A stretch of DNA of 52,779 bases. It comes from Calcarisporiella thermophila CBS 279.70 (lineage: Eukaryota; Fungi; Calcarisporiellomycota). Under the pieces are notes generated by a model. The model saw nothing but the letters and a program-made list of their open reading frames with translations. It did not search any database and had not been told where the DNA came from. Both the position numbers and the translations under genes were made by a program. Position 1 is the stretch's first letter. Each line of letters opens with the position of its first letter. Positions 694 to 45,500 of this stretch are shown piece by piece. Where the stretch lies: NCBI RefSeq assembly GCF_041956535.1, contig NW_027192195.1, positions 1,265,809 to 1,318,587 on the forward strand, read 5' to 3'.

Positions 694-1134
694 AATAACC
701 CGTATAATTTTTACTTTTATAGAAATAATTAGGGTGATTATATTCTTTCTTTCTGGCTAAAGTTTGTGCATTTCTTATTAGTAGTGAATAGTTATATCAA
801 AGTTAGCTCACTCATGAAGAAAAGCGTAATGTGTTTGACGTGGTATTAAAAATTAAAATAACGAAAATCTGAGTAATTTTTTCAGCTAGCAAAGAAATTT
901 ACTAAATCCAGTTTTTGATAGAAGTAATATGAAACACAATATCATCACCAAAATTAGTACAGCAATTGATTGTTTATTATATTCACATATTGATTTAGAG
1001 CTAAGATTGAATTCGACACTTTTGCATATGATCATTTGTTATATTCACGCATTCTTTAAAAATAAAATTCTATTAAAGCATCACACTGTTTATTAACAAG
1101 TCATTGAATGTATAATGTATAAACTAAGCAATTT

Positions 1135-2016
1135 CTATTCATCTTTGCGTAGCAATTTAATGACAGCTCCAACTTCTTCATCTCCATATCCCGCAGCAAT
1201 TGCTCTCTTAAAGATTCCCTGGACAAAGGTTGGGAATTCAGTGTTGATCTTAGCTTCATGAGCCTGTTTTTTAATCAGATCTACTGACGCCGAGCTAATT
1301 TTAACTGAACTTTGCGGTTTGCTAAAATTGGAAGCTTGGATAACATCACTCTCGTGCTTGACCATTTCTCCAATGAGCGGAGCAACATTGGTAATCATAG
1401 ATCCTAAAGCATCCACTCTAATTCCTTCCGACTCAAAAATACGTGCACTGTGGAGAAAGCCAAACATTGAACCCCATAAGTAGGATAAGAAACCCAAATC
1501 CCATGCAGATGCGGCACCAATCGCTTCACCCATAAATTGCAAACCACCAGCAAGGATTTTGAGAATTGGCTCTGTCTTTCGGAATACGGATTCGTTACCA
1601 GACACGAAAACGGGTGTTTCTGGTCTTCCAATTTGGGATGGTGTCGCTAAGATAGCGCCATCAAGGTACTCTGCACCATGCTTATGTACCCAAGTTTCGG
1701 CTTCCCGAGCATCCTGTGGAGTTCCGGTACTTAGCTCCACCAATAATCGACCCTTAAGTGTTGGAATGACATCTTCGCTATCGAGGAGATTGCGTGTCAC
1801 TTTATAGTCGGTCACGCAAATGATGGAAATGGGACTTGCATTGATTGCCACAGCAACGCTGGGAGCAAGAATACCTCCTTCACGGACCACTGGTTCAGCT
1901 TTCGAACTCGACCTATTCCAGACTGTGACACGGTAACCAGAACGAAGTAGGGTTTGAGCAAGCACTACGCCCATATCTCCCAAACCGATTATAGAGACTT
2001 CCTTGATCACTGACAT
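1135..2016 (-). CDS. NAD(P)H-dependent imine reductase (IRED)/beta-hydroxyacid dehydrogenase-family oxidoreductase, 293 aa, intronless
   Basis: GLGDMG Rossmann motif, VWNRS, ELSTG, YLDGAI, AASAWDLGFLSYLW (Asp-type IRED helix) and C-terminal AGYG; complete single-exon ORF. Confidence 0.85.
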   Translation of the reverse strand: MSVIKEVSIIGLGDMGVVLAQTLLRSGYRVTVWNRSSSKAEPVVREGGILAPSVAVAINASPISIICVTDYKVTRNLLDSEDVIPTLKGRLLVELSTGTPQDAREAETWVHKHGAEYLDGAILATPSQIGRPETPVFVSGNESVFRKTEPILKILAGGLQFMGEAIGAASAWDLGFLSYLWGSMFGFLHSARIFESEGIRVDALGSMITNVAPLIGEMVKHESDVIQASNFSKPQSSVKISSASVDLIKKQAHEAKINTEFPTFVQGIFKRAIAAGYGDEEVGAVIKLLRKDE

Positions 2017-2681
2017 TTTTGATGATAATTGTGATTTTTGATGTTGGTTATAATATTGTTGGCAATTCTAGAATTTGAGTATCCCATATTTATATTGTAG
2101 ACAATGGTTGAAAAGTTGAAAAAATTTTCCATTTTAGATGAAATGGTAGAGGATGTGATGCGCATAGGTGCCATTAACCACCGTTGCAAGATTTTATTGG
2201 GTAGATTCTCAAAGAATAACATTAGTAAGTACTGACTAATGCTTAGATTTCACTCATTAATGAACATGTAACTTTGTCCCTTGGAAATTTTCTTTTGCCA
2301 CTATATAATAATTCAAAAGCCTACTAAATCCAATAAAATTTAATTTCCGAAATAACTCCATCCAATTGCATGGAAAGAGTTACAGTATATCTAAGCCCCA
2401 TTCCAATACTCTATTATATTTTTTGGCGTTTGCTAATTACAGCGTATAAAAATCACAAACCTAGCTTCGCAATAAATCTTATATTAGACTAATGGTTCAC
2501 TGTTTAGTCAAGAATTGTATATTTAATCACCATTAAATAAATATCAAAACTAATTTAATTTGAGATTTGAGACTACAGAAAAGCACAAATTCACATATAT
2601 TATCCAAATTTTGGGTAATATAGGGAAATTAATAAAACATGTGAGGATATCTCAAATATAGCTTGGGCAACTGTCTGCCCC

Positions 2682-3830
2682 TTAAAGAGGTGTAGTTGGT
2701 CCTCCACGAAGAAGAGACAAAAAGAAGCCCAATAGTGATACAATAACCCCCACAGTATCATCAAAACCACAATGAGCACTATTTGCCTTTCCCCAATAAA
2801 AGTGATCAAGTGCATTAAGTCTTTCAATGGGCACACCAGGGCTACAATTTTTGTCGTTGGCATTCAGACAGAGAATGACTTTGTTATATTCACTGTAGTA
2901 TAACTCATTACCACGGTGCTATAGTACAAAGAATAAATAAAAAATCATATTGGATTAGATTTGGGATGAATGCAGTAGATATATAACCATTTAAATTATA
3001 AATTCGGCGTACCTTGTATCCCATAAATTCTGGCGGAAGATGAACAAAAACATCCTGCTTGTTGGTTAAGCGGTAGCCAAGGATGTTGAGATTAGAAACA
3101 TAATTTGCGAAGGTGGAATCGCCAACCAGTGGCTCCTCCAAAGTAACAAGAATAATTTTGTTCAGGTCAACTTTGACATCAGCTGCGAGATAGGCAGCAT
3201 GCACGGTTGCTAGTGCTCCACCTAGCGAATGACCAACCACTTCCACGGTATAATCTGGATATTGTTTCCATTGTTTTTGGAGCAACGTGCTGATACGTTT
3301 GGCTACGACAAGGTGAGTGGCGCGAAAACCTGTAAATGAAACGTTAATTAACAATGAGTATCATCAGAAAATAAATTTGAAAGGGGTTCATATTTTTAAA
3401 TACCTTCATGAATCTTTCCTGGAACATTACCCCCTACAGGAACTAATTTCAAGTGCGCATTCGAAATCCATGTTTGGATCGAAGCCGATCCTCGGAAACC
3501 AACAATAAATGTTTTACGAAGGTCATCTCTGGCAACATATCCGGTGGCGTCTTGCGGTCCCTGTAGAGTGAAGTAATCCAAGGTGGTCGTGTTTGGGAAT
3601 CTATCGCAATAGCACCCACATTTGAATGGTTTGCCGGGTTTCAAAAATGGCGAGTGGGCATTCATAGCGAGCATGGCATACTTTTCAGCTGCCTCAATTT
3701 GATTATTTTTCAACATGGTATGGTCAACCTTTGGAATAGCTCGCAGGGAATCGGCATATGGGTTTGCGGAAGCGTCGGCATGAGTTTGTGCCAAAACGAC
3801 AACCAAGAGAAAAATCAGCACAGTGCGCAT
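2682..3830 (-). CDS. Secreted class-3 triacylglycerol lipase (Rhizomucor/Rhizopus-type), 3 exons: 3830-3404, 3329-3013, 2918-2682
   Basis: Signal peptide MRTVLIFLLVVVLAQ, FRGS, IHEGF across intron 1, GHSLGG nucleophile, QDVFVHLPP Asp and LDHFY His; GT-AG introns join in frame. Confidence 0.9.
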
Positions 3831-6585
3831 ATTTTAAGGAAGGAGGGAGGATAAAGATAGGGAAGGATTGGATTTGGAAAAGATGGAGGTTAGATCTGTG
3901 GAAGTTTATTCCTATGCTGATGGAAAACTGTTGATGATGTTTAAATAAAAAAATCACGAACCTTTATTTAAAAAAGAATGAAATCTTAACACTTGGCGTG
4001 ATCCAAGGATGCCAATATATTTTTTAAGTTTATGCAAATTCGTCCTATAAGGTGCTTTAGTATTCCTAGTTTCAACATCGGTGGTTAGTGAGGACAAAAG
4101 TTAGGCTAATTTTTTGATAATCAATGAAAACTCAGTTGGCTGGGGGGTTTAATGTTTATTAATTAATATATGCGATCAAATCTAAGTTTATTTGAATCTC
4201 CCTTATACCCGATAAATTGGCTGGAGGAGTGTGGAGGAAAAAGTCTCTTTTAATTCTACCATTTGAAGACGTAATTGACAAACTAATTGTATAGTATCAT
4301 TTCGGAGCTTGGATTATTTTTTTACTGAATCATGCCAGGAGATTTGGAGAGGTACAGAAATTTGAGTTCTTCATATTGAGATATGTTAAAATCTTGCTTA
4401 GATAAGTTATATATCTAAACTGCATTTCATCTGGGCTCAATTTTCCAAAACATCCGTTTACACGATTAGCTAAAACTCGTATATTCGGAATCTACTAACT
4501 CTTATTTTATTATTCTTGATCATCCAATAACTTCACAAACAATTCTTCACATGCTTTTGCTATCCTAACTTATTACTGCTTCAATTTATTCAGTTCTTAA
4601 TGTAATTTTGTAATTACAGTCAAAGTCCTCTCTTACATAAGTGCTTTTATATATGAAAATTTTCCTATTATATTATTATTTTTCTGTAATGGTAAATGAA
4701 ACTGTCATTGAGGATTCAACGAGTCAACACTAAATTGATTCGGTTTCGAGACATAATAACTTGTAGAAAGATAACTAAATGTACTCAATGTACCATTAAT
4801 TTCTGGTGTAGTGGTAAAAGATATGACGATGGATAGGGAATATGTTATGTTTAGTACAAACGCTAATAAATAACGATTGTTAGCAATTTGGTGAGGGTAG
4901 AATCCCACAAGTTTCCTCGGAAAGTAATCATTGACCATAGGTTTTATAGTTTTTCAATCATCCCATTTTTTTCCCATTTTGCGCATTAATGCCGATAAGA
5001 TTAGGTTCATATTCAGTAGAATGCACATACAGCGTGTTGCACGAAAATGTTTTTGGTTAATTTTGGATATGGGTGCTAGTCTACTAGTTTCTCTTTTCAA
5101 AAGCTAGTGCCTATATTCAGAGCAAGCTTCCCCGGCTGCTGTAATGTATACTAAACTTTAATTAAGTCCTTAGAAAATATTTTACCGATTCACCCGATAG
5201 CCTAGGGCATAGACAAACTTTACGTTTTATCCTTTTTAATCACATTAGAATTTGGAAGGCTTTCATTAACTGACTATGCGAATCTTGGAATAATGCCTTA
5301 ATAAACTTTAACTCCCTACTCATGTGCATTGGAAAATACGAGACCAGGCTAAATAGATTCAAAATTTTTCAGAAAATTTTTCGACCTTCTGAGGTGCTAT
5401 TAATAATTAAGGCAGTTGTCCCTCTCTATTCAGTTACGATTGTTTTGCGTTGATGAATATTATTTAGATAATCAAGCATATATAAGCACATTCTGGAATC
5501 CTTTGTTAACGGAAACCTCCAATACTTGAAGATCTTGCCTTACTACTCTCTAGACCGATTTCAATTGTAAAATTAAGTGTTTTTACTAAATAGATATATT
5601 CTTTCAAGCAACTTACAGATAACACAGGTTCGTCAAGACTTACTGGAAAATTGCAGCTGTGATTTAATGGTATCCAATATTCTTGTTTTACTCGGTTTTG
5701 GACGGGTAGAGCGCAGATAAAACAGAGCATAAAATTTCAAGTAGCCCAAAACTCACATTAGATATGTGAGTGTATATTGAACTTACATGTATATAGGATC
5801 AAGCTCCGCATCACCAATGCCTAAGATGGTGCGGCTATGAGAATTCGTAGATATTTTCAATTTGAGATGAAAGAAGTGTGTAGTAATCCGGTCTCGGGTA
5901 TATGATTTAGCAAAAATTTCAATATTGAGCATAAAAAATGTCGAAGATGATATATTATGAACTCTAAGAATAGCAGCATCGCATTATATCGGTCGTCAAA
6001 TATTAGATGCATGGGTAAATAATAGTGTTTATCGAATCGAATGAGAGACACGCCAAAATTTCTAAAGTATTACAATATTCTAATCCATATATGCACTTCT
6101 TTGGGGTGAGTATAGCTTTCTAAGTTAGTGGAAAAACTCCAGTCCTGTCTAGATTTTTTTATTTTTGGTCAACCCAACCTATTGCAATTTTATCACGTAC
6201 TTTAGAGGTTTCCGAATGCCGTTAGCTGAATACCCGAGTTACAATGTATCAACGTAATTCAGTTAAAATCTTCCAATTGGCCAATTATGAAAAATATGTA
6301 CCGGGACTTCGAATTTGAACAAATATTTGTCCATGCCAGAAGATTACTCATATTGGGACTCATGGCTGAGATTGAAAAAAAAAATTCGTCCCGCACCTTC
6401 GGATTAGATCCGTCAGATCTATTGAGAATTATATCTAATAAATTATTAAGCATACTTTCACTCCATTTCACCTCCAAGATATGATATATAAATACTGCAA
6501 AAGTTTGCCTAAAAGCGTTAATTTCTTCAGTATAATCCACCCTAAAAAAACTTATCCTACTTTCTCTCCCAGTAATCAATTCGAA

Positions 6586-9015: not shown

Positions 9016-9852
9016 TCAATTTTGCTGCCCTTTTAGTATCCAAGCTTTCGAAGATTCTTCAGTTTTTTTCGCTAATTCAGGGTTGCTTGCTATCTGTTTA
9101 ATCTGATCCTTCTCTGGAACATTCAATCCTCGTTGCACGGCAGGGCGGACTTCTATGCGGTCGAGCCAAAGCTTGAGGTTGGGAAGACCATCAATCGAGA
9201 CTCCCGCCCACTGATGTGATCGGATCCTAAAGAAATAGACGGTATTTAGAGACCATTAAATTTACTTGATTAGAGTATAAAGTACTAACCATGTGAAATT
9301 CGCAATATCTGCCAAAGAAAACTGTCCTGCTGCAAGCCATTCTCTTCCTTGCGAAAGATGTTTCTCGATAACTTCATATAGTCGCCTTGTCTCTTTTTGG
9401 TATCTCTTTATTCCATACTCGATTTTCTCGGGCGAATATCTATAAAAGTGACTGGCTTGACCTTGCATCGGACCCACTCCTCCCATCTGGAACATAAGCC
9501 ATTGCAAGACCTCAGAGCGGGCGCTAGGATCTTTAGGGTAGAGCTTGCCATTTGGATCGTAATGCTCACAAAGGTAAATCATAATGGCGCCTGATTCGAA
9601 AACGTTAAAGTTATCCCTTGAGTGATCGGTCAGAGCAGGTATGCGACCATTCGGATTTATCTTGGTGAACCACTCTGACTTTTGTTCATTTTGAGCAAAA
9701 GAGATGGATTTTACATTATAAGGCAGATCGAGTTCTTCTAGAGTAATGGATGCTTTATGCCCATTAGGGGTTGCAGCCGTGTAGAGAGTCAGGTTCGGAA
9801 TGGCCATGGCTGATTTCAAATGCTTGGAGAGTAAGTTTAAACGATTCAACAT
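9016..9852 (-). CDS. Glutathione S-transferase, Nu/Ure2p-like class (YfcG/YghU-like), 2 exons: 9852-9290, 9226-9016
   Basis: TPNG motif, [31 protein letters not shown] and FSLADIA. Exon 2 continues [38 protein letters not shown] after a GTTAGT...TAG intron. Confidence 0.92.
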
Positions 9853-23329: not shown

Positions 23330-23975
23330 CAGCCTGCTTTTGACGGCGGTTAAATCCAGGAATGTGCCCAGCACTTTCACGAATTTAACTAGCGCCCCCC
23401 AAAATTGCAGCCATCACGCCAATTGCCACGGTGCGATGCGGTCGCCCCAGCAGTCAATCGGGACACTCCGATGCGCGGTGGGGATAGTTTCGAGGCTCTC
23501 CTAGAGGATATACCCGGACCTTCTCTCGATGCCGAGGTCGAAATAGCGCGATTTCAACGCAATGAGCACGGGGGGTGGGGGGGGGGTGATGACATTCCTT
23601 GCTCTCCTCAGCTCCTTATCTGCCTCTACCAGCTCAACATAGTCACCCGTCTTGGTAACACGCTGGAGCTTGTGCATGACACAAGTCTGCTGTGTGGTGT
23701 TGTAGTCCAGGCCCATTCCCCGCTGATAGACAAATGACGAAGGTGTCATCAGCGAATGGAAGCTGGTTGAGAGCATTAGTGGCGACCTATTGCACGTTGG
23801 GAGGAACAAGCGGCACCGTCTTCCCTCCCTTGCTTTTGCCCTTGATATTGACATCGTGCTTGCGGCCGTCAGAGGCAGGTACCTCTGGCTCACGTCCAAT
23901 CCCACGAATTCGCATTGGGAAAAGTGCATCGCCATTTCATGTATCCAGAATCCGGCCGCGCAGCCTAACATTTTT
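23330..23975 (-). pseudogene. Class I SAM-dependent methyltransferase (LaeA-like/Methyltransf_25) pseudogene fragment
   Basis: LGCAAGFWIHEMAMHFSQCEFVGLDVS, then PPNVQ*...NALNQLPFADDTF in another frame, and LQRVTKTGDYVELVE; frameshifts and a stop. Confidence 0.7.
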
Positions 23976-26347: not shown

Positions 26348-27088
26348 TCATTTAGACTTTTGGTGATGCTGAGTCTTTAGGAAGAAACTCATCGCTTCAT
26401 GAAGCTTACAACAAGATTGTATGGCCAAAACAAGGGGAATAACGATCCAAAAAGAGTTAAGGAATATAAAGTAAAAATAGAAGTAATAAGGATGAGGTGT
26501 ACAGTGAGGTGATCCTTCCAAGATTGAAGTAGCGTAGTAAAGTACATCTCCGTAAATATGACATACTGAAACTACGAGTTGGACAATATGATGGTATGGA
26601 AGGTTCTTGTAAAGAGCATAGGCAGCCAGATAACACGCTGGCCCATCAAAATGCTAGTTGGAACAAATGTCTTTAATTAAGATATTAATCAGGATAAGGG
26701 TATTAAAGGACAGACTTACAGCCGTAATAAACTCCATCACTACTATAAACATGTCGCTAGATAGGTATCGTGAATCACTTTTGGCATATTCTTTCCATAA
26801 CTGTGCGATCACGAACTGGTTCCCAGCAATGTTGGAATGATTCCAGCTAAAATAGCCCTCCATTACAATATGAATGGTGCCACTGATGATAAACCATATA
26901 AAGGTGAATTTCTCCATGTGAGAGATGTTCTTCCTCGTACCGATGGCTGCATTTGCAGCAAGAGTCACAAGCGCAACCATGCCAAAGAATATTGCTAGGA
27001 TTTTTTCCAATGGCATTGTGGATGCAACATAATGAGGCAGATCAAGATCGCGAGGGTAGTAGGGATGGGAGACATTAGTTAGCGACAT
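26348..27088 (-). CDS. EBP: EBP-family sterol delta8-delta7 isomerase, 224 aa, 2 exons: 27088-26720, 26653-26348
   Basis: HPYYP, WFIISGTIHIVMEG, QLWKEYAKSDSRY, MEFITA|HFDGP, IYGDVLYY, YFYFYFIFLNSFWIVIP; phase-0 GTAAGT...TAG intron. Confidence 0.93.
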
Positions 27089-27397
27089 ATTATTTGAGGT
27101 AGTTTTAAACTATTTATGGAAAAAGAGAAAATACAAGTAGGGGTTGCTTTCTCTCTACTTGAGTATTATATACAACTGGAGAAGGCTTTGGAAGTAGTCA
27201 TAAAGAGTGCAAATTTCTCATACGATCATAAATCCTTCCAATTAGCTTTGAGTGGTATTTAAAGTTTTCAAATCAATTCATCAAAAACTTTAAAGTACTA
27301 CTCCATATATTTTTTGAAAAACTATATAAGCTTCTCGAGATGTTCAGATGCAAAATTCTTCCAATGTCTAATTACCAACCATTGAATATTATTATAA
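27089..27397. promoter_or_regulatory. Bidirectional promoter shared by EBP and ERG24
   Basis: 309-bp gap between divergent ATGs. TATA-like boxes near both ends (about 27165 minus, about 27323 plus), an SRE-like CTCATACGAT at 27217-27226 and an inverted repeat at 27250-27303. Confidence 0.55.
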
Positions 27398-28931
27398 ATG
27401 TCCTCTCGTGATCTGAATCCCAAAACACAGCATTACGAATTTGGTGGTCCTCTCGGGACCATTCTTGTAATGCTGAGTAGCTCTTCAATCGTCTATTTTC
27501 TGTTCTTGACATGCAACGAAAAACAAGGTTGCTCCATTGATCCTTCCTCATTGCGTCAAGCCTGGCATAATTTTCAATGGCGAAATATTTTCGATTGGAA
27601 TGTGACAATCTTGTATCTGCTATGGGTCTCCTTTCAGGCTATTCTCTATTATATTGCTCCTGGGAAGACTGGTCATGGACCATTATTACGCGATGGGTCC
27701 AAATTGATTTATCCTATTAACGGTGCGTCCACTTTGTTAATGATATTTAAGCTCTAACTTCAATGTATGCTATTTAAATAGGGCTTAGCGCGTTTATTAT
27801 CACTATGATGACGGCAGCTGCGACTTATTTTATTTGGGGCATCTATCCCTTTATATATGTATACGATCATTTTATTCAGTTTGCTACCGCTGCGTACCTT
27901 CTTTCAAATGTGCAAGCAGTATTCCTCTATTTATATTCATTCCGCCCGGGAACATTATTTAATTTAATCGGAAATACAGGATCCCCTCTCTATGACGTAT
28001 GTATTTAATAATCAATATTTTGGCATAAGCAACCATTAACTTATATCGTTAAATAAGTTTTTTATCGGACGTCCACTCAACCCTCGCATTGGATCTTTCG
28101 ACCTCAAGTTTTTCTGTGAGCTTCGCCCTGGTATGATTGGTTGGGTGGTGTTGAATTTATGCACGGCGGCCAAGCAGTTTCAGCTACAAGGCCAAATTAC
28201 ACACTCGATGTTAGCTGTAGTTCTTTTCGAAGCAATATACGTGGTTGACGTTCTCGTTAATGAGGTCAGTGAGGCATCTAATGTGATTTGGGATTTGACC
28301 TCTGGCTTAAATATCATCCAATATTTCAGGAAGCACTATTAATGTCCAATGACATTACATCCGAAGGCTTTGGATGGATGCTGTCATTTGGAGATTTGTG
28401 TTGGGTCCCCTTCACGTATTCTCTTCAGGCACGATACCTTGCTTTCCACCCAATTCAACTCAGTCCATTGGCATTGTCTCTCATTTCAATCTTGTTTTTC
28501 GCTTCATATGCCGTGTTCCGCCTATCTAACACGGAAAAAAACGCCTTCCGTGCTAACCCTGATAACCCTGCTTTAAAGCGTAAATCTCTAGAGCAGACTA
28601 TTCATAACTATATTGGATGATGACTGATAGCTTACTTCTATTAACAGATTTAAAATTTATTGAAACCGAAGCCGGAAGCAAATTACTAATAAGTGGGTGG
28701 TGGGGCGTGGCTCGACATATTAACTATACCACCGATTGGCTGGTTGGTCTGGCATGGTGCCTATGCACTGGTTTTGATGCAACGATCCCCTACTTCTATG
28801 CGATCTATTTTGGTCTGCTACTTCTCTACCGGAACGAGAGGGACGAACATAAATGCCAACTAAAATATAAGAAAGATTGGGACCGTTATCGTAAATTAGT
28901 GCCATACAAGTTAATACCTGGCATTTACTAA
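27398..28931 (+). CDS. ERG24: Sterol C14-reductase (ERG24/LBR family), divergent paralogue, 426 aa, 5 exons: 27398-27722, 27782-27996, 28058-28264, 28330-28579, 28648-28931
   Basis: LNPKTQHYEFGGPLG, GNTGSPLYD|FFIGRPLNPRIGSFDLKFFCELRPGMIGW, GFGWMLSFGDLCWVPFTYSLQARYL, LLISGWWGVARHINY, KYKKDWDRY...VPYKLIPGIY. All introns are GT-AG and in phase (1281 nt spliced). Confidence 0.93.
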
Positions 28932-30112
28932 AATGATATAAATTGTATTAAAATATAAAATATAATTTTGAAGATTAAATCATTTACTCTATACTCTGCA
29001 AAAAGCTCTCATTGGTAAAAATGGCAGTATGCGCTTTAGAGATTTTTCGAAAATAAAAAAAAAATTTTTAAGTTAAGCCCAAAACTGATATATAGTACAT
29101 GAACTCTGGCCAGATTGCCCAAAATCTACCAAAGATCGATACGTCAAAAATGCAAATTCGGCCGTAACTTAAAGCACCCAATAATGAGTAAAAATAGTAA
29201 GTCTCAAATGTGTAGTTAAATAGAACCAATTTAAACACATAAATATATAATCCACCGGATCTAAGTTGAATCCCATAAAATATAGAGCTAAATGATCATG
29301 AAAGATTTCTAGACTTAAATTATATACTGTATATACTACTTTCTAGTCCACCCTGTCGAGAGAAATGTATAAAAATTAGCATTAACCGCCGCATAAATTT
29401 CTCCTTTTTATACCACTCCCCACACTTATCCACTGCTTCTACGCCAAAAAAACGCTTCGAGCTACGCTTTTCGAAACCCCTCAGACCATATGTAAATTAT
29501 CCTTGTACCAATCCTCCTCCTGGTACACTGATACCAACATGAGATCTTCCTGATATTTATGATGGAAATAAAATTACACCGGCCAAAGATCTAGTGGGTA
29601 AAGATGTTTAGATTTGATCATCCAAAACAGCTATTCATATCGAATGATTGAATGATTGAACAAGATGGAGAGTCTAGTATTCATAAGACATACTCGCCTC
29701 CTCTTCAGCATAGCAATTTTTTTCTTAGTGGATTATAGCTAATAAAAACCATAGAGCAATCTTCAAGTGTAAAGTGTTACAGTATATACATACAAAAGAG
29801 CGAGTATAACTAAAGGATTCAAATATGCAAATCAGCACATGATAACCATGGGTATCTTTGTGAAGATTATCTTTTATTATTCAGCAATGCTGTAGATCGT
29901 CAGATCATTTTCTTTGATTTTTAAATTCCATTTTTTGTATTTGGTTCATTACCAAACTGCTAAGTTTATTAAACCTACCAAAAAGAAATGCTACATAGAG
30001 GTATAACTTAGACTCAGAAATTTTTATTGTTATCCAAGAGTCCTTGAAATTTTTCACAAATGGATGTATTGATTCACTTGTTATAAAAAATCGCAAATAA
30101 AATATTATTAGC

Positions 30113-31568
30113 TCAGTTAATTGAGCTATTAGCCATGACTTTAAGGCATTCCTCAATTGTGGCGATAGCGCTATCAGCTTGCTCTTTCGTTAGAATTAGT
30201 GGTGGCAGGATAGTGATTGTATTAGCAGCTCCAGGGATAACAAGCAAAAATCTCTGAAGAGCTAATTGAAGAAAGGCTTCCGAAGTGGAAAAAGATTGAT
30301 TGGGTTGGTCACAAAACTGTATGGCGATCATCATGCCTCGGCCACGTACTTCTTCAACTAAAGTGCCATAAAAAGGTTTGCACACATCCTGCAAGCTCAT
30401 CAAAAGATGATTTCCCACATCTTGAACTTTCTGGAGAAAATTATGCTCACTGAGTCGGTTGAACACATAGTGTCCTACACGACATGACAGGGGATTGCCG
30501 CCGAAAGTTGAACCGTGATCGCCTAGTACAAGATTTTATATTTAATAAAAATACAATATTTATGCCAATTTTTAATTCAATACCCATAGACACAATCTTA
30601 GCAACACGTTCGGATAGAATCACTGCACCAATGGGCAAACCATTGCCTAGAGCCTTTGCAACAGTAATAATATCCGGTGCACAATCAGCACCGTAATGCA
30701 TATGAGCCCATAATTTTCCACTCCTACCAAGACCGCACTGGAAAGGCAGATATTGAATATTAGAACAAATCTTGGGAAATTGAAAACTATTTAAATTTAC
30801 CTGGACTTCATCATATATAAGGATTGCATTTACTTCATCGCATCGCTTTCTAAGTGCCTTCAGAAATTCATATGTCGCAATATGTATACCACCACCACCT
30901 TGAATAGGCTCTACTATTACAGCACAGGTATTCTCATCGATAGTTTCAACAGCTTTTTCTACGTTATTGAATTGTAATTGTACACTGCCTGAGAGCATAG
31001 GGCGGAATGGATCACGTAACATCCGTATTTCGAGTGCACTCATCGACAATGCCCCCATCGTACTTCCATGGTAACCATCTTGAAATGACACCACTTTGTA
31101 TTTATTCTCTGCTCTAGAAGGATCTGAGGAATTGGTTATGTGCTTGGCAAATTTACGCGCCATTTTCAGGGCAGCTTCATTAGCTTCAGATCCAGAGTTT
31201 ACGAATATAACCTTACTAGGCCTGCGTAAATCGTCCTTAATAGCGGTAGAGGTTTCAGTAATGTGTTGATTGGTAGCTGAAATAAGCGATTTAGCGAGTC
31301 GTCCCGCCCACTCATTAATGTAGAAAGTTGAAGTGTGTATTAATTTACCCGCTTGGTCAGAGATAATTTGCGAGATCTCTTTGTCTGCATGACCTAGAGC
31401 ATTTACCGCAATTCCTGACATAAAATCCAGGTATTTATTGTTTTCGGCATCATAAACGTAGCAACCTCTCCCGTGAGTGAGAACAATGGGTATGGGTGGG
31501 AAAATCGGTGCTATATATTCTTGTTGAAGTTCAAAGACTTCAAGCGGATTCACAGTTGCATTATCCAT
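30113..31568 (-). CDS. Class-III PLP aminotransferase, ARG8/acetylornithine aminotransferase-like divergent paralogue, 443 aa, 3 exons: 31568-30801, 30737-30584, 30522-30113
   Basis: YLDFMSGIAVNALGH, NSGSEANEAALK, IYDEVQ|CGLGRSG, PDIITVAKALGNGLPIGA (PLP Lys), HGSTFGGNP and EVRGRGMM; 1332 nt spliced in frame. Confidence 0.92.
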
Positions 31569-32773
31569 CTTTGTATATCTAGGGAAAATGAAGATATTAG
31601 CAAAAAAAAATTAAACCAGTTTATGATATAAATATTGCCAATCTTTGACTTGCTCTTAACGTTTCTTCTAATCAATGGATAGGGGTTTAAATAAAAATGG
31701 AAACTACGGGAAAATATTACTAACCAGTCCTAATAAGCCATCTCAATAGTTTTGTGGAACAACCAAAATCTCACTCAACAGAAGCTTAATATTCGCAATA
31801 CAGACTCTGATTGTCGGTTAATTGATCCAATGAAAACCCTATTTGGTTTTGTCAAAATTTTTGGCATCCCTAAGTCGAAATAAAGACAATATAGTGAGAA
31901 AACCTTTAAAATAATCAAAAATTTGCTAAGTAAAGGTTAAATCATATTCCTTCGACTTTAGCGTGAGTTAGAAGTAAATATTAAAATCGTGCTATGTTTA
32001 AAATAGTTTTAGTGCAATTACAGTAGGTACTTGCTTTGCTCGGATTGTTTCTCCGAATCGCTTTATCCATTTCGTACTCAAAAGGCATAATGCAGAACGA
32101 GAGAAATGGGTGCATGATTTGTTACTAATATGATCGGATATTTTATCTACTATGTTAACCAGCTTTCTACAGTATATCAATTGATTAATAATATAGGGAA
32201 GGTTTGATTAAAATTACATGAGATTCGGAAATTCCCGATATGTGACAGTAGCGATTGTTGGAGGCTTTATCAATGCAGTGTAGAGGTGAGGAATCGAATA
32301 AATAAAAAAGGAAAATCTAAAAAAAGAAAAATCGTAGTACGACTAAAGTATTGGCAGAGGGAGTGGCAATATAATAGAGTTATAGTTAAGTCAAGGTTAA
32401 AATATGTATTGTTACACATGCTCTTGACTAAAACCATTAGCCTGGTCCTATTTTTCTATGTAAGGCAAATCAATGTATACCTTATAAAAACGTGTGCTGG
32501 CTAACATGATATCATCCTTTTGCTTATACGGCAAACTCCATAGTAGTTGAATTCACTAAGCCCTCTTGGCTGAAAGTTACTTGAAACTCAATCAGAGCAC
32601 TGATCCTCATTCAGTTTATTTTTTTGAAGGCATACTTTGTATATCTATTTCTTTTTACAAAATATTTTCCCGCTTCAACCATTTCTTTATAAATATCTGC
32701 TCAATTTCTCTTGTTGCTCACCTTTTCCTTTAAGCTGCTATATTGCATTATTACCGGTTAAATTTTAAGAAAC

Positions 32774-34830
<2,057 letters not shown>

Positions 34831-36749
34831 AATATGATAAATAGATGGAAATTCGTTTAAATTTCACATCAAAATTTTAGATAGTCATTCCTCTGCACCG
34901 GTATATTTCAAATATATTATTTATTTATTATAACTTTTCATACCATATTTCATGCTTGCAAGTACATGAGTAGGATTTGTCTATAATCCGTGCTTGGCGA
35001 TTATGAACCAATACGTTGAATAAACTAAGCCTAGCTTTGCGGTTTCGGCAAATTTCTATTAGTATTATAACAAGTTGAAAAATGTATGCTATTATCAAAG
35101 GCACAGTAAGGAGGAAAGGGGGAAAAAGGATGAAATTTCGGGCATTAATGGATTTTAGGAAGAGTTCGATTTCATGAAACTAACCTTGTCTACGAGTTAA
35201 GGACTCTTAATATGGGCGGATTGGGAAATTGAGGGGGCGTGGATCGAAATTGGCAGTGAAGGGATGTATTCTATTGGGATTATAGGAGAATTGAGAGTTG
35301 TCGATGGAGTTTAGGGTGTTAATGTCGTTGAAGGAGTAAAATTTTGATTATGCTGAGGGAGAGAGCAAGTGGTTGCTATCGAATGAGAGGTGAAGGCGAG
35401 TAATATTAGAGGTGGAGCAAGCGAATTAGGCTTGTTTTGAGGTGATGAAAGAGTAACTGATTAAATTTGCTCAGCCACATTACAGGTTTTCTTGGATGGA
35501 TCCAGCATTCTTGTTTATGGTCACTTAGAAGTTTGGAAAATTTTTCGAACAATTTCTTCTGTTAATCTTCGAGTTGCAGGATAAGTGAGTATATGCAACT
35601 GGCAAATCTTTCGTATTGACCACGGTTCAGAAGTGAATCCAGGACGGTATAGTGGCCATTATTCGGTTGGCTCGGGCCTATTCAGCGTTGGCTTCAATCC
35701 ACCTCGCTCACGTTGATGTTGATGAACAGGGAACTCATGAGCCCTATTGAAGGGCCGCTTGCATTCATCGCAGCTTTTCCCAAGGTCGAAGATATTGAAA
35801 TGCCATCTTACTGCCTATAACACCACATTGGGGTCTCGAAAGATGATGAGATTGTCGGCTCTGAGTGTTTCGACTGCGCGGCAGAAGTTTCTTGTGCATA
35901 ATGCTTTTCTAGTCGAGCGGTTCGTTAAGAGAGTTTGAAAACTATTATAACGCTAAAAGCGAAAAAAGACGGTGGATAATTTGGAGGGTAGAAGGGTCTC
36001 TCTGCAGCCTTGCTACGATCAGCATTTAGGACTCATGTTTTTCCTCGGTCACGTACAGGACAGTTGCTAGTAGAATATCATATAATAAATCAGTCAACCA
36101 TCAACTGCAGCTCTTCGGTGGAATATATCTCAAGACTCTGCCGTAGCAGGGTATAGTGTTGCATCACAACCGAGTAGGTAGGGTCAAGGAGTTCCACGTA
36201 TGGGAATTAATGAGAATGTACAGGTGGCAAATTGGGACACTTACCTTGCCTTGGTCGTTCGAGAGAATGTTATACTATAGAACAAGTATTCTAGATCTAG
36301 TTCTAAGTAGAGGAAACTAATGCAATTTATGGTTGCTATAGAAGGAAGGTCCGTACCTCTTTATTTTCTTACCCGACCAGGCGAAGCGAAAATATAGCCC
36401 CCTCTGGTCAAGCAATATTATGAACATTGTAACACAAACAAGCCTTGATCCCTCTTCACATAGCATTCATTTATCTTATATACAATGCTGATTTCTCCAA
36501 TGTTCACGGTCAGGGGATAAAATTTTTAAGGTTAGGCACACATTTCGTATGGATCAAGCAAATCTTTCATAATAGATATAATCAGTTATATGCCCAATTA
36601 ATGGATACAAATTTTTCAATACAATATTTTTTTTTAAAACGGGCGTTGTTTGTACAATATTTAGATAAAAATAATAATAACAATTTTTCGCAAAATTTTC
36701 TGGAAATTTAATTTATTTAGCCGATTCAATAACTGTTGTAATTGTTAAT

Positions 36750-38564
36750 TCAGTAAATGTACTGTTTGGTTTATAGTAATTGTGTTAGATAAAAAATTTT
36801 TTAATTCTGGAAAAGTGTATCGCTTACCGGTATAAGTTTATATGGAACTAACTTACAGTATTCTTCCCAAAATTTTCCGTATTTGCCACGACATCGCGTA
36901 TCGTCCCGTTTCGTGCGATGCAAAAGCAGAACTGTCATGTATATAATATAAAAGTATGCTAGAATATTGTCAAACCCGCAGGCGAGACACATTGCTAACG
37001 AAAGGAGAAGATCGCCGAAATAGTTGAAATGGCGAGCAACTCCTAGAATTACAAAGGCAAAATTAAAGATATTTTCCAACAAATTTCTCACATTTCAAAA
37101 ATCTCAATACCCCAATACCCAGAAGCTAACAGAATACTCTTGTGCTTTTTTCCGTCGCTGGTTACATATTCAGGTCTAATTATCTTTGGTTTGCGACCCC
37201 AAACGAGGCATGTTCCATCACTGCGCCTCACGATGTCTTTTTGATTATTCGCACCACGAAAAATGAGATATCCAATTACACCCAGAATAATTACAGTCCA
37301 AAAGTATAGGGGTGAGAGTTGAATCGGGTTACGAGAGAGATAATGCGACTGAAGTGGATACATGAATGGGAACCAGACCGATGTACCCCATGCCAAATAG
37401 AAGCCAAAGTGATCATGAGCAATATCTGAAAAATAAATAAGGGCAGTTAATGGTTGAATATTGAAATCAGAAGACACATATGTCGATATACCGATAGTTC
37501 GAAGGTACCAGTCCTCAAAGTAAAAAAAATCAAACGTGTATAGGGCATGCAAAAATATAACCGCAACCATTGAGTTGGAAACATAACCAAATTTTTTATA
37601 TTGTGCGGCAGCAAAACTCATATTGATAAGTGACCATGCAACAAACCCTGGGCGCCCATTATGAAACAATTTGAAATCCCATAGTTTGCCGAAGCGTGGA
37701 TTGAACTCAATTCCCATCATGAAATCATATATCACAGAGCCGGAGAATTTCCCTATAAAAATGAAGACTTTAAAAAAAGGAAAATATTTTTAAAATATCA
37801 AATAATTACGATCTTCGGGATGAGAAGGGAACAAGTGGGCCTTCACATAGGCAAAGGCACTAAGGAAATACCCGTACATAATGGTAGATAAAAGTATACC
37901 GCCCCAATAGTCATGTATTATGGAAGCTGGAAACCATCCAAGCATCATAGAACCAACAATGAAAAGTATATTGCAGAAAACCCAGATTCGGAAACCATTA
38001 AGCTACGATATATATAAGCCAAATTTATGAAATATAAATTATGCAAGAAATTTGAAGAATATATAAAAATACCTTATATGATAAAAGATATCCGGCAGGA
38101 GTTCTCTGTCCGTATCCAATATTGGCCGGCACAAAAGCGTACAAAATCCCTTGGAAAATTATCCATGATATATGGATCAGTGTTGCAGTCCAATTGAATT
38201 GAGGTAAACGGGAAGTGAAAAATTGCCTCAACGCCATTTTTGTCCAAGGTAGACTAACCAATTCAAATATAGGACCTACTAGACTGCAATGATAGTAGGT
38301 GCAAGAGGACCAGACATAGACGACCAACATTGGGCAAAAAATCAAAAGAAATAAGCAAGCGATAATAGTAAGTATTGTGACATCTAAGTCGAAATAGAAA
38401 AATAAAATCATATTGAAAAAAAATTGCAATCAATCAAAGTGGTCAACCTGAAAAAATTAAGTTGATAAGTTACCTCGGTCTCGACCCCATGTTTGACCAG
38501 TTTGGGCCTTTAGGCCTTGGTAATTATAACTAGACCTTGGTTTCTGTTGCTCCGATCTATACAT
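36750..38564 (-). CDS. DHCR7: 7-dehydrocholesterol reductase (sterol delta7-reductase) family, 465 aa, 7 exons: 38564-38474, 38383-38073, 38002-37810, 37752-37492, 37425-37111, 37042-36828, 36761-36750
   Basis: [12 protein letters not shown]|[35 protein letters not shown]|[21 protein letters not shown]|[31 protein letters not shown]|YIY*; 1398 nt spliced in frame. Confidence 0.93.
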
Positions 38565-39597: not shown

Positions 39598-42500
39598 CTG
39601 CTATATTGGTGCTTTCGTCCGAGTATATAAACTAATGGATCAAGCCAACGGGTCAACCAACTGGTATACATTAAGCGTGATACGGCAGCTACTCCACATA
39701 ATTTACCATAATACTGTTAACGTATTCAGTATCGCACCGCAAGCTTGAAATGAAACCTTCAAACCCTTGCGTCCTACACAGCGACTCTAATAACGCTGCA
39801 GAATCCTCTAGTAGTCGCACAGCTCCACCGCCCCCAGTGGCAATTGTTACTTCAACCTCTTCCATAGAGGGAGCTACCCCTCAAGCACTCGCTGATAGGA
39901 TTCAAAAACAGTCCGCGATAATGGAGCAGATGTTTCTCATGTTTGGCAGATTCTTGGAGAAATCACAGCCATCAAACCAGCCAGCTTCTCCAGGATTTAC
40001 CAGCCCAATTTCTGTCAACAGCGGTCAGAGTAATAGCATTTCCGAAATACATCGAACAACGCGACTCAAGCTGTAACCTCTGAGCCTATTGACTAGTCTC
40101 GGCGCCTCGAAACTTCCGATTTACCCGTTTTTAAAGGTATTGCATTGGAGGACTGGCATGTAGATCGAATGTGCAACGAAAATTAAAAGGTTCAATAAGA
40201 CCTCAGATTACGAATTCTTACTATAGTTGCCCAATATTTTGAAGCATGAAGCTCTAACACGACGGCTCACGCCACCTATCTCATTATGGGAAAAAGAATT
40301 GATATCATTTACCCTAGGTTAACCTAACCTTTGTTAGTTTTTTGTTGTTTGTTTTGTTATAGGAAAATACATTGTCCGATTTTAGGAAAAAAAAATATAT
40401 TGAGTCATTTTCGATTTCTTATTTACATATAAGCCCATTCACCTTACATGTATTTCATTGTTCCTTACCGATCATCTATTTTCATAAAAATCTTTGTCTA
40501 TCCTTCGATCTCTGCTACATCCAGTACGTAGTTTACTGATGAACTCTTGGAAAATTGTAACAGTGGAAATGACGTTCACTTCTAGTGTAGCTGGACCGAC
40601 TAGGATCATGGAAAGTAATCGTTTTCTTTTATATATATATCTATACATCCGCCTCCAACTTAATCTCCTTCATCGTTCCCGAATCACGGTCAAGCACCCA
40701 CTAGAGTAGAATGACCCGTCCTAAATCTCCAGGACTTACGCAGGGTGGCCAAGATCACCCAAACTCATAATCTTGATTTCAACTATGTGAAATTCATACT
40801 ACCGAGCCTCCTCGAGGGACGTGCTGAACAATGGTATGATGTAGACGGATATATGCAGCTTCCTCATTGTCAATCGTGAGAAGAAGTCCAAAACCTGTTC
40901 AAAGCACAATTCCGGAGCGCTTTTCCCGAGTGCTCTGCTCGAATAGAGCTTTCCCAACGAGTCTTCAAATCGGACGAGGATATTGAAGACTCATATTACC
41001 ATAAGCGTGAACTGATCGCCCGATGCTACGGTCAAAACGTCTACAACTGCACGCAAATAGGCGAGATATTAGCTGGTATTAACCAAAGACTTGCCAGACG
41101 CGTTGGAATTCAACTGATGCCTCTCCACGATCCAACGCCACCCGACTTGCTCAAAATCCTCAAAATGGCCGATGACGAACTTCCCCGAAAAATACGACAG
41201 GGATGTTTCCTTGAGAAAGAGCAACTAAAAATCTGCAGGAACAACAGACCTTGAGAGGTAACTAACGACAGCAAAAATGGTCGACCGGCTCCCTCGCGTT
41301 GCCCGAACTGTAAAAGGAACCATTGGAAGAGACAGTGTCCCGAAAACCAGGGCCACAATGATAAGAGAAACCACCAAGCTAAAAATTTTCAAGCCTGGGC
41401 AGCCGAAATCACAATGGTTTCCGCAATTTTCGTTCCGCGCCAGGCCAAACAACAAACACTCAGCCGCAAGATCATTCCGCTTTCGGCTACCTAACCCTAC
41501 TCCAGTGCTGGCATTGCAGGGATTTAGCTCCGTCGAAACTCCAGTTGGTTCAGCAAATCTCTGTTATCCTGTATGCAACGAACGGGGACAAACTACAATT
41601 CTGCCTGGACTTCCTCGTCGTAAAAAATGTCCCTCCGGGTATAATTATCGGCACGGATACAATGGCGCCTTATGCAGCAAAGGTGCTATATGAGCCTCCG
41701 ATCTTTCCTGTCAAATCCTGGACTAACATTCCGCCTTCGAAATGAGGAGAAGCAACATGCTCCGAATGTATTCAGGGCAGTAGTATCTCATTGCCAAGTC
41801 ATTCGCCCAGGATACCAAGCTCTAATTTCGGTGCGATTAACCTACCAGCAATCAGTCTTTGATACACTTCTAGAACCGGTGTGTCTGAGAGGGGGAGAAT
41901 TGCTGTACAAGCTGCGAGAACCATAGTTAAGGCCGGGAATAAACATGTACATATTCCGGTTACTAACGCCAGCAGTGCACCAATTACGCTTATGCCTGGA
42001 GAACTCGTTGCTTTGGCACATCCGTTTTCGTCCTCCACGTACGTCGTAGTTCCCGTTCAAAGGACAGAAAATACTGATACCACGGAAGAAGAATTTCATA
42101 GTCACTTCATCGAAGCCTTTTCTGCAGCCCATTTGAATCCCGAGCTGACCCTAGAACAACTAGAAGCAGTAAAGGAAAAGCTCTGGAAACACCATAAGGC
42201 TTTCTCGTTGGATGGTCGTCTTGGAAACACTAACCTCTTGCCGTTGGACATTAACACGGGGAACGCCAAACCAGTTTCTCTACCACCATATCGAGTGTCA
42301 CCACGAGAGCGTGAAGCGATTGAGAAGGAGGTCCAAGAACTTATGGCGCAAGGGATCGTCGAGGAGTCTAACTCTCCATGGGCTGCTCCGGTAATCCTTG
42401 TTCCCAAAACGGATGGTGGAATACGCTTCTGCATAGATTTCCGATGTTTGAATGCGGTTACGGTCGCAGATCGATACCCCTTACCGCGGATAGGCGATCT

Positions 42501-45500
42501 CCTCTCTCACCTTTCAGGCAAGTCATGGCTCACTTCCTTCGACGCTAACAAAGGATTCCACCAAATTCCTCTCTCCTCTGAAGACGATCATGCAAAAGCA
42601 GCATTTCGAACTTATCTGGGCCTACATTAATACTCGCGAATGCCGTTTGAGGCAAAATACAGGCCCTCAATTTTCCAACGACTAATGGATTGTCTCCTAG
42701 GAAAACAAAAGTGGGAGATGGAAGTTGTTTACAGCGGCGATCTTATCATTTCAAGCAAGATCTTTGAGGAATACCTCTCTCATTGCTTCACCATTCTCTC
42801 ACTCGTCATTAGCGGCGGCCTCACCTTCTCACTGAAGAAGTCTTATCTCTTCTTCCCGAAGCTGACAGTACTTTAGTATTCTGTTTCAGGACTCGGGATA
42901 GCAACCTTGGAAGTCAAAACGCGCGCAGTAGCTCAGTGGGTAAGGCCAAGTACCGGTAAAAAATTGCAACGATTCTTGGGCTTAGTAGTACACTACCGCA
43001 TATTCGTCAAAGTTTACACAATCATAACCAAGCCACTAACGAAGCCTTTAACCTAAGAAAAAGTACAATATTTCGATGGGGTGATGAACAGGAATCCGCG
43101 TTTAAATTGCTTAAGGAGAAGCTCTGCTCGGCACCGATCCTCACGCACCCAGATTTTTCTTGACCGTTTTGCATATACACCGATACAAGTACAATTGGAC
43201 TTGATATTATTTTCGCGTAAGAACAGGAGGATGCCGAGAGTGGGGAGTTAGTCGAAAGAGCTATCTGTTATCTTTCCCGCCAGCTCAAACCCGCCGAACA
43301 GAACTACTCAGCGACGGAATTGGAATGCTTAGCCGTAGTATGGTCCCTCACAAAGCTCCATGCTTTTCTTAATGGCTCCAAATTTCAACTCAGCCGATCA
43401 TATAGCTCTTCGATGGATCATGGATTACAGAGGACCAAAAGCCTGACTCCTACAGTGGTCTATTCACTACCGTCCAGATTGATCGAGCCAATGTTGATTC
43501 TCTCTCTCGGAAGCCATCACCAGAAGTGAATGCTGTTTCCGCTGTTGCAGTCTCAAACTTTAATCAACTAAGTACGCGCTAGCTACCGTCATGACGAGAA
43601 GTTTTCTGAGATAATCCTTATCCTCTCGATAAACACCAAAGACAAGGACGCCTGTGATAAATCCAAGCTTCATGCATTTTTCACTGAGGATGGCCTTTTA
43701 TTCCTATAGAGTTCAAGTGATGATCAGCTAAGCCAGTTGTGCATACCCAACCATGGGAATATCAGATTTTCACTACTTAAAGAAGTGCACGATACTCCGA
43801 TGTCCGCACACCCCGGTAGGATCAAGACGTTGGAACTACTTCAGAGTCGATTCTACTAGAATAAAATGTCGATCGACGTAAGGCGCTATGTATCCAGTTG
43901 CACTTCATGCCAGCGAAATAAACCCACCAACCAGAGGACCCCGGGGCTCCTCTCCTCGCTACCTATACCAACGCAGAGATGGCAAGAAGTCTCAATGGAT
44001 TTCATTACAAAACTGCCGCAGACACCTGGTGGTCACGATGCAATATGGGTAGTAGTAGATCGGTTGACCAAACGCGCGCACTTCTTCGCAATCAACGGAA
44101 CCATCTCAGCATCCCAACTCGCTCAACTCTATTTGTGCAAGTTATTTCCGCTGCACGGGATACCCAAGTGCATCGTGTCAAATAGAGATTCAAAATTCAC
44201 GTCTGCATTCTGGAAAGAACTATTTTCTACCCTAGGAACACAGCTATCGCTAAGTACCGCTCATCACCCACAAACCGATGGACAGTCGGAAAGAGTCAAC
44301 TGTTCGTTAATCGAAATGCTCCGACATTTTCTAAGTTCACGACATGACGCTTGAGTTCAATACCTGCCATTATTGAGTTTGCATAATTACTCGGTACACT
44401 CAACGACTGGAATATCGCCTTATTTTTTGGGCTTAGAATACCTGTAAGGAAATGAACTTAGCCAAGTTCAATGTCTTTAGCACCTTTGCTTAGCAAGACC
44501 TTTGTCTCATCAAAGACCAAGCAACACCCATCCGCCAAGAGCAATACAAGCACTTATCCATGAAAACCCACTTTAGCTTAGTTATACTTTTGTCCTTTTT
44601 ACATTATTTAAGGCACACGATCATTTGTCAGAATTATTTTAGGAATCACTCAATGTCACTTTTCCCTTTGTTTTCTTTAGTCAATTTCCCCTTTTGTCTT
44701 TAGAATAAACCTTTTTTTATTTTTCTTTCCAAATTCAACTGTCCTTCCTTATAATATCACCCATACATATCCTCAGCACTTTTCAGATCACACGACGAAC
44801 CATTACGAGTATAGTCCGTTGAAGATTTTCTCCAACAGTCAACGCTATTGCGCACGGCCCAAGACGCTATAATTGAAGCCCAAACACGCCAAGCCGATTT
44901 TTATGATTGCTCCCATCGTCCGGTAGAGTTCAGGGTTGGAGGTTTTTAATGCTGGTTACGGAGAACCTTCAACTACCTGTGGACGTTGACAAGACTACTA
45001 GAAACTTTCTACCGCGCTACATTGATCCTTTTCAATCACCCGGAAGATCAGCTCTTCCGCCTATACTCTCGATTTACCTTATACATTTCGCATGCATCCG
45101 ACGGTAAATATTTTCAAGTTGAAGCCCTTCATTGACACCCGAATGAATTTAGTGCACGTGAGTCATACCCTCCTCCGCCCATGTTTCGCCATAACACCGG
45201 ATTTCTGGAATACGAGGTTGAAGACATTATCCGGACACGCGGGGTGAGGAAAAGAAAAGGTATACATAGTCAAGAGGCGAGGATAGCCCGACGAAGATAA
45301 TACCTGGAAGCCCGTGGAAGATCTTCGTAATGCTCGAGACCTCGTTCGATGATTCGAAGCCACAAGGTCATTTCAATCTTCCCGACGTCTAGTTTCTAAG
45401 GAGATGATATAGCAGGACGACATACACAATAGTTGATAATACCATAGAATGATCTTCAAGTGCAGGATAACCTCTAACGCGCACAATATTTTGAGTAGAA

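Follow-up and report, generated by a model that had tools for sequence, protein, structure and literature searches.

The window analysed here is a stretch of 52,779 nucleotides from the genome of the fungus Calcarisporiella thermophila CBS 279.70 (RefSeq assembly GCF_041956535.1, contig NW_027192195.1, positions 1,265,809 to 1,318,587 of the forward strand), and all positions given below, unless another contig is named, are counted from its first letter. It contains, on the minus strand at 30113–31568, a three-exon gene for a class-III aminotransferase of 443 aa that appears to be a duplicate of ARG8, the fungal gene of the mitochondrial acetylornithine aminotransferase (AcOAT), that has taken on a new function. 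The product of the joined exons is a 100% match to the C. thermophila record 'uncharacterized protein VTP21DRAFT_9633', called P0001 from here on. Judging from the sequence, we assign a probability of about 0.5 to the reading in which this neofunctionalised ARG8 duplicate has ceased to be an AcOAT and probably works in the cytosol, where its substrate would be an uncharged carbonyl compound, possibly one derived from a sterol. Its class-III scaffold would still be competent for the cofactor pyridoxal 5'-phosphate (PLP), with the charged residues that set the specificity of the family swapped for small or apolar ones.

Substrate-Site and Cofactor Residues

MAFFT was used to align P0001 with the 119 homologues that matched it best, which are ARG8s of fungi and ArgDs of bacteria, and the roles of its residues were assigned by alignment to published structures. 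Three positions distinguish it from all the others. Position 169 is Arg in 119/119 homologues and Ser in P0001 (motif DGYHGST), position 225 is Glu in 119/119 and Gly in P0001 (EPIQGGGG), and position 411 is Arg in 103/103 and Thr in P0001 (NTITILPPL), which makes P0001 the only one among the 120 sequences to depart from the Arg/Glu/Arg combination. Ser169 (codon AGT, 31062–31064, minus strand, as for the other codons given here) replaces the Arg of the FHGR motif (AstC Arg141, St-ArgD Arg144, Slr1022 Arg163, OAT Arg180; AstC being an enzyme of E. coli, Slr1022 the AcOAT of Synechocystis, and OAT ornithine aminotransferase), Gly225 (GGT, 30894–30896) the switch Glu of EPIQGEGG (Slr1022 Glu223, St-ArgD Glu198), and Thr411 (ACT, 30212–30214) the C-terminal Arg (Slr1022 Arg402, OAT Arg413). 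There are further changes in the substrate site, namely Tyr23Phe, Asn81Thr and Tyr184Leu; the first of them (Phe23, TTC, 31500–31502) concerns a substrate-site Tyr (AstC Tyr18, St-ArgD Tyr21, Slr1022 Tyr39). A HMMER alignment to PDB sequences likewise places Ser169, Phe23 and Leu184 of P0001 opposite Arg141, Tyr18 and Tyr154 of AstC.

These substitutions belong to a wider but limited set. Of the 106 columns with a conservation of 90% or more, 15 hold a residue in P0001 that is not that of the majority (Y23F, R25P, N81T, F121I, F166Y, R169S, T177S, Y184L, P193S, E225G, L371M, G374A, G399F, G406A, and R411T), the median for the other sequences being 2. All four residues that recognise the substrate in Slr1022 (Tyr39, Arg163, Glu223, and Arg402; PMC10057298) are among the changed ones, a coincidence with a hypergeometric p of 2.7e-4; adding Asn81 and Tyr184 brings it to 2.9e-6, for a six-residue set that was not fixed beforehand. 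Mutant structures of the Salmonella AcOAT exist for Y21K, N79R, R144Q, and E198A, and at each of the positions that correspond to these four P0001 has a changed residue. Relative to ArgD and ARG8 it also carries inserts at residues 107–115, 181–182 (two residues, in the mobile loop), and 379–385.

On the cofactor side nothing has changed. The PLP set that we considered comprised the Schiff-base Lys, the Asp at the pyridine nitrogen, the Gln at O3', the phosphate-binding Ser-Gly pair, and the Thr contributed by the partner subunit, and every one of them is kept in P0001 and lies in an invariant column: Lys284 (TVAK), Asp253 and Gln256 (DEVQ), Ser125–Gly126, and Thr313 (HGSTFGGNP). The family alignment has 42 invariant columns, these contacts among them, and P0001 is unchanged at 42/42. 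A preliminary description of this DNA, made from the letters and the translated reading frames, had reported a retained PLP machinery (DEVQ, TVAK, STFGGNP) together with motifs altered to YHGST, EPIQGGGG, and TITILPPL; all the quoted motifs are indeed present in the translation, and the alignment with ArgD and ARG8 that it called for shows Arg, Glu and Arg invariant in the homologues and absent from P0001.

What these residues do in the characterised enzymes is well documented, and the roles in substrate binding and specificity that the preliminary description had ascribed to the Arg/Glu residues agree with the published work (PMC3590144, PMC10057298). The Arg of FHGR binds the alpha-carboxylate of the substrate and the gamma-carboxylate of 2-oxoglutarate, and the switch Glu forms a pair with the C-terminal Arg. 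In E. coli AstC with bound succinylornithine, the substrate is held by a single direct salt bridge, that from Arg141, and Tyr18 and the loop 151–154 shift to make room for it (PMC3590144). In Slr1022 the Michaelis constant (KM) for acetylornithine rises 4100-fold in R163A, 2080-fold in R402A, and 65–73-fold in E223A/S, and Y39F is left with 7% of kcat (PMC10057298); by motif, Arg163, Arg402, Glu223, and Tyr39 correspond to Ser169, Thr411, Gly225, and Phe23 of P0001. With Arg169Ser, Glu225Gly, and Arg411Thr, P0001 has replaced every residue by which the carboxylates of N-acetylornithine and of glutamate/2-oxoglutarate are held.

As to its family, P0001 is a clear class-III aminotransferase, PF00202 being matched on exon 1 (175.7 bits, E 1.6e-51) and again on exon 3 (80.9 bits, E 9.7e-23) well over the cut-off of 30.5. 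In NCBIfam and in the PDB alike, it matches acetylornithine/succinylornithine aminotransferases best. Nevertheless, it scores 390.6 bits with TIGR00707 (argD), under the cut-off of 410.05, and 365.9 bits with NF002325, under the cut-off of 372, and it misses every curated AcOAT and OAT cut-off. Controls do pass TIGR00707, with 479 bits for the ARG8 of Glomus, 490 for that of Mucor, and 440 for that of the fast-evolving S. japonicus. By these profile scores, then, P0001 is outside the functional definition of an AcOAT as the family cut-offs draw it, with a cofactor site that is kept. The AlphaFold model of P0001, built from a 99-sequence alignment, is confident (mean predicted local distance difference score, pLDDT, 91.7; predicted TM-score, pTM, 0.92), and the nearest solved folds are AcOATs, with TM-scores up to 0.96 when normalised by the target chain and 0.84 when normalised by the model.

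One could argue from this that P0001 is still an acetylornithine (or ornithine, or gamma-aminobutyric acid, GABA) aminotransferase and simply a cytosolic isozyme of ARG8, since the models of the argD type match it best, the score falls barely under the cut-off and the fold is nearest to AcOAT. We regard this as very improbable. A mutation of any single one of the lost residues increases the KM for acetylornithine by a factor of 65 to 4100 (PMC10057298), and P0001 has lost them all, with Tyr23 in addition; the curated AcOAT and OAT cut-offs are all missed, and a canonical ARG8 is found elsewhere in the same genome.

Gene Structure and Probable Origin by Duplication

Exon 1 (30801–31568, minus strand like the rest of the gene) encodes residues 1–256, from the annotated ATG to just past DEVQ, where it ends in phase 0. 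Intron 1 (30738–30800) has 63 nt and the borders GTAAAT..CAG. Exon 2 (30584–30737) has 154 nt and encodes residues 257–308, including CGLGRSGK and the Schiff-base Lys284 (codon 30656–30654). Intron 2 (30523–30583; 61 nt, GTATTG..TAG) interrupts the codon of Gly308 in phase 1, and exon 3 (30113–30522) encodes residues 308–443 and the stop, with HGSTFGGNP and NTITILPPL. As a side observation, intron 1 is in frame and free of stops, and its retention would add 21 residues between DEVQ and CGLGR without truncating the protein.

A search of the own genome recovered a second gene of the ARG8 type on contig C4 (locus 732068–735805), whose spliced model has 439 aa. This canonical ARG8 is 45% identical to P0001 and keeps FHGRS, EPIQGEGG, and NTIRVVPPL. 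It has introns at both positions found in P0001, one in phase 0 after DE(I/V)Q and the other in phase 1, splitting the codon of the Gly that precedes (D/E)HG, with position and phase the same in both genes, and the middle exon is 154 nt long in the two of them. In an IQ-TREE phylogeny of 40 sequences, P0001 falls on the fungal side of a split from the bacterial ArgDs supported at 100/100, with a terminal branch of 1.19 compared to a median of 0.2. It groups there with the long branch of S. japonicus, which is likely a case of long-branch attraction. A clade of P0001 and the canonical ARG8 of C. thermophila is not rejected by the approximately unbiased (AU) test (p = 0.127). Because of the common introns and the AU result, a duplication within the fungi followed by fast change is the origin that the sequences favour. 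That the gene is ARG8-like had already been stated in the preliminary description, and a paralogue derived from ARG8/ArgD is borne out by the family matches, the common introns and the fungal side of the tree.

Horizontal transfer was also considered as a source of the gene and is unsupported, given the two introns common with the canonical ARG8, the position in the tree and the AU value. The base composition is not read as a sign of foreign origin either. The canonical ARG8 locus has a GC content of 0.56, the region of the copy described here 0.36, and the sampled genome a mean of 0.47, so the block of genes around P0001 (0.33–0.38) belongs to the lower tail of the genome, where 11% of the sampled 2-kb tiles are under 0.40. 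The housekeeping CYP51 loci, at 0.38–0.41, indicate that low GC is not peculiar to this block.

The two copies differ at their N-termini. The canonical ARG8 has an extra 5' exon that encodes an Arg-rich mitochondrial presequence without acidic residues (4 Lys/Arg and 0 Asp/Glu among the first 25 residues). P0001 starts approximately where the second exon of the canonical gene starts, and the first 25 residues of its N-terminus, MDNATVNPLEVFE, include 4 Asp/Glu but 0 Lys/Arg, in keeping with the acidic, presequence-free N-terminus described previously. Upstream lies a divergent intergenic region of 1.2 kb (31569–32773), which a scan for a presequence exon found to hold weak candidates only and no convincing one. 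The best of them (31867–31806) has a poor GTCTGT donor and would need a 227-nt intron, and was judged unlikely. A CTAAT branch-point-like site followed by a pyrimidine tract that ends in CCCTAG (31579–31600, minus strand) is located 10 nt before the ATG; from its sequence it could be the acceptor of an intron in the 5' untranslated region or a relic of the ancestral ARG8 presequence intron. From the missing presequence, which is the sole basis for it, we infer that P0001 is cytosolic.

A Block of Sterol-Enzyme Paralogues

The neighbours of the gene, annotated from open reading frame (ORF), Pfam, PDB and own-genome searches and with approximate bounds, are what brings sterols into the picture. 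On one side there is an EBP-like gene (26348–27088, minus strand), 42% identical to its paralogue on contig C27, and an ERG24-like sterol reductase gene (27398–28931, plus strand), 50–67% identical to a paralogue on contig C22. On the other side, transcribed divergently from the aminotransferase gene, is a gene for a CYP51-like P450 (32774–34830, plus strand), which shares 39–55% identity with two CYP51 genes of contig C12 and whose best PDB hits are all CYP51, followed by a DHCR7-like reductase of the ERG4/ERG24 family (36801–38429, minus strand), 67–71% identical to its paralogue on contig C11. Each of the five genes in this AT-rich block of 12 kb (26348–38429) is a second copy of a gene of core metabolism, and four of the five are of enzymes that act on the sterol nucleus. 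The divergence from the paralogues differs strongly, from 67–71% identity for the DHCR7-like gene to some 40–55% for the CYP51-, EBP-, and ARG8-like ones, which suggests that the block was assembled stepwise. The contig is 1.34 Mb long and ends 20–70 kb away from the block, which on the right is bounded by the remains of a retroelement (reverse transcriptase and integrase core, 41881–44354, plus strand).

It is conceivable, if unlikely, that P0001 has acquired a new PLP-dependent function of a non-sterol kind, acting on some other uncharged amine or carbonyl or even as a lyase, racemase, or mutase, and that its sterol neighbours are coincidental or regulatory. The combination of intact cofactor residues and replaced substrate residues fits that case, there are epimerases, decarboxylases, and lyases with the class-III fold (some are found among the profile and PDB hits of P0001), and no chemistry ties the aminotransferase to a sterol. 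However, all four of its immediate neighbours are paralogues of enzymes of the sterol nucleus, the promoter region is common with the CYP51-like gene, and the adjacent genes include none of a non-sterol pathway. These data on the neighbours bear also on the claim of the preliminary description that P0001 is a cytosolic enzyme for an uncharged acceptor such as a steroid: the loss of the charged residues speaks for the uncharged acceptor and the missing presequence for the cytosol, and the steroid part of the claim depends on the neighbourhood.

Proposed Reaction and Its Weak Points

Under the sterol reading, P0001 would be a cytosolic transaminase that works at the surface of the endoplasmic reticulum, with a pocket that may have become larger, uncharged, and more apolar and that could take in a sterol-derived aldehyde or ketone. 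The candidate acceptor would be the 32-aldehyde of the CYP51 type, with a 3-ketosteroid or a seco-sterol aldehyde as alternatives; among the carbonyl intermediates of sterol metabolism, the first is the only one made by a family of enzymes that the block encodes. An amino- or aza-sterol would result. As for the amino donor, it could be one without a carboxylate, or else one anchored by the lineage-specific Arg182, which lies in the two-residue insert of the mobile loop, or by Arg185 close to it.

Several observations weigh against this proposal. With both Arg169 and Arg411 gone, glutamate and 2-oxoglutarate should bind poorly, a difficulty that the preliminary description does not take up, and the position of the 'flipping' Arg of the omega-transaminases is Pro404 in P0001. 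For the usual amino donors no binding site is apparent, which also fits a crippled enzyme. The segment of residues 170–190, just after Ser169, is the sole low-confidence part of the structural model. No obvious enzyme that would make a 3-ketone or cleave a ring is encoded in the cluster, and the link to sterols is one of gene neighbourhood alone. There are no orthologues either: when exon 1 was used for a word search of a collection of 5.8 billion protein clusters, nothing closer than approximately 50% identity turned up, and for this reason purifying selection on P0001 is not measurable. A search with residues 158–236, which span the derived motifs, returned only two ordinary AcOATs with both arginines kept. 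Finally, the GC content at third codon positions (GC3) is 0.35 in P0001 against 0.78 in the canonical ARG8, and such a low value may reflect low expression.

Part of this would also be explained if P0001 were a pseudoenzyme, the product of a decaying or catalytically dead gene copy in a subtelomeric region that is rich in AT and flanked by transposons, with its losses due to relaxed selection. It has the most departures from conserved columns and a long branch, the GC3 is low, the gene is found 20–70 kb from the contig end and beside a retroelement, and P0001 has no known donor-binding residue. We nevertheless hold decay to be improbable. The ORF is intact over two introns with good splice sites, the invariant columns with the PLP contacts are all kept at a divergence of about 55%, the fold is predicted confidently, and the changes, rather than being scattered, cluster at substrate-site positions (p = 2.7e-4 to 2.9e-6). 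Moreover, P0001 has recreated motifs of working transaminases. Comparison with the omega-transaminases, for which we used the sequences of the Arabidopsis GABA transaminase (AtGABA-T) and of a variant of the Vibrio fluvialis transaminase (VfTA) printed in PMC13224807 and PMC12878350, shows that plant GABA-T and the V. fluvialis variant have in common with P0001 the YHGST motif, a form of YHG(S/V)T, and the motif EPxxG(A/G)GG, in which the switch Glu has given way to a small residue. As both motifs are shared with functional transaminases that do not act on dicarboxylates, adaptation rather than decay can be argued. The similarity has its limits, since the omega-transaminases keep, on inspection of the sequences, the 'flipping' Arg some 10 residues before PP(L/Y), which binds pyruvate or alanine and is the Pro404 position mentioned above, and the overall sequence of P0001 is AcOAT-like.

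Comparison With Known Systems

The closest relatives by descent, fungal ARG8 and bacterial ArgD-AstC (EC 2.6.1.11; TIGR00707), agree with P0001 in fold, ancestry, and PLP residues, and differ from it in having both carboxylate arginines, the switch Glu, Tyr23, Asn81, and Tyr184, and the presequence exon that P0001 is without. The closest analogue of the history proposed here is found in plants. GAME12 of tomato, a transaminase of steroidal-alkaloid synthesis, is a duplicate of GABA transaminase that has lost its targeting peptide, belongs to a metabolic cluster and, with an altered active site, adds nitrogen to an aldehyde derived from cholesterol (PMC11666457). Compared with this enzyme (GAME12 / GABA-T2 of Solanum), P0001 is likewise a duplicate of a core class-III enzyme, with no targeting peptide, a remodelled site and a location among sterol-modifying genes, and a cytosolic addition of nitrogen to a sterol-derived carbonyl would be a further likeness, as a proposal for P0001. 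The two differ in that GAME12 belongs to the pyruvate-type GABA-T subfamily of plants, keeps the C-terminal Arg and uses GABA as donor, and in that the activity of GAME12 has been demonstrated and P0001 is known from its sequence.

Fungi do produce nitrogen-containing sterols. The 15-aza-D-homosterols A25822B, UCA1064-A, and UCA1064-B, from Geotrichum flavo-brunneum and Wallemia, strongly inhibit the sterol delta-14 reductase (PMC7179204, PMC5201246), and they represent a conceivable class of product for a cluster that joins an aminotransferase to ERG24- and CYP51-like enzymes. None has been reported from Calcarisporiella, and these two papers report no biosynthetic genes for such compounds. 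That P0001 is the enzyme that introduces the nitrogen in a new fungal pathway to amino- or aza-sterols is accordingly a speculative idea, to which we give a small chance. It would then aminate the CYP51-derived 32-aldehyde, or a 14,15-seco aldehyde that would cyclise to a 15-aza-D-homosterol of the A25822B type, and the ERG24-, EBP-, DHCR7-, and CYP51-like copies would be pathway enzymes, inhibitor-resistant targets, or both.

If this aza-sterol reading is true, the gene would offer the first genetic handle on azasterol biosynthesis in fungi and an independent fungal parallel to the plant GAME12; the nitrogen step of the plant steroidal alkaloids was solved only in 2024, with a recruited class-III aminotransferase of the same kind. 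A pocket derived from ARG8 without the known arginine anchors would also be an unusual natural scaffold, one worth considering for the biocatalytic synthesis of amines from bulky apolar ketones. Should the link to sterols fail, we would still be left with a natural experiment in which the specificity residues of an AcOAT have been replaced together and the cofactor site has been conserved.

Other Features of the Window

At a distance of approximately 24 kb from the sterol block, the window contains an intronless ORF of 293 aa for an imine reductase or reductive aminase (1135–2016, minus strand), with the Pfam domains NAD_binding_2 and RedAm-like_C and imine reductases as best PDB hits (E 1.6e-58). 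An enzyme of this kind would pair logically with a transaminase whose products are cyclic imines, though other genes intervene here. Other genes on this side of the block are a fragment of a LaeA-like methyltransferase (23501–23971, minus strand), a glutathione S-transferase (GST; 9262–9852, minus strand), a class-3 lipase (2908–3354, minus strand), and the C-terminus of a GMC oxidoreductase (70–627, plus strand).

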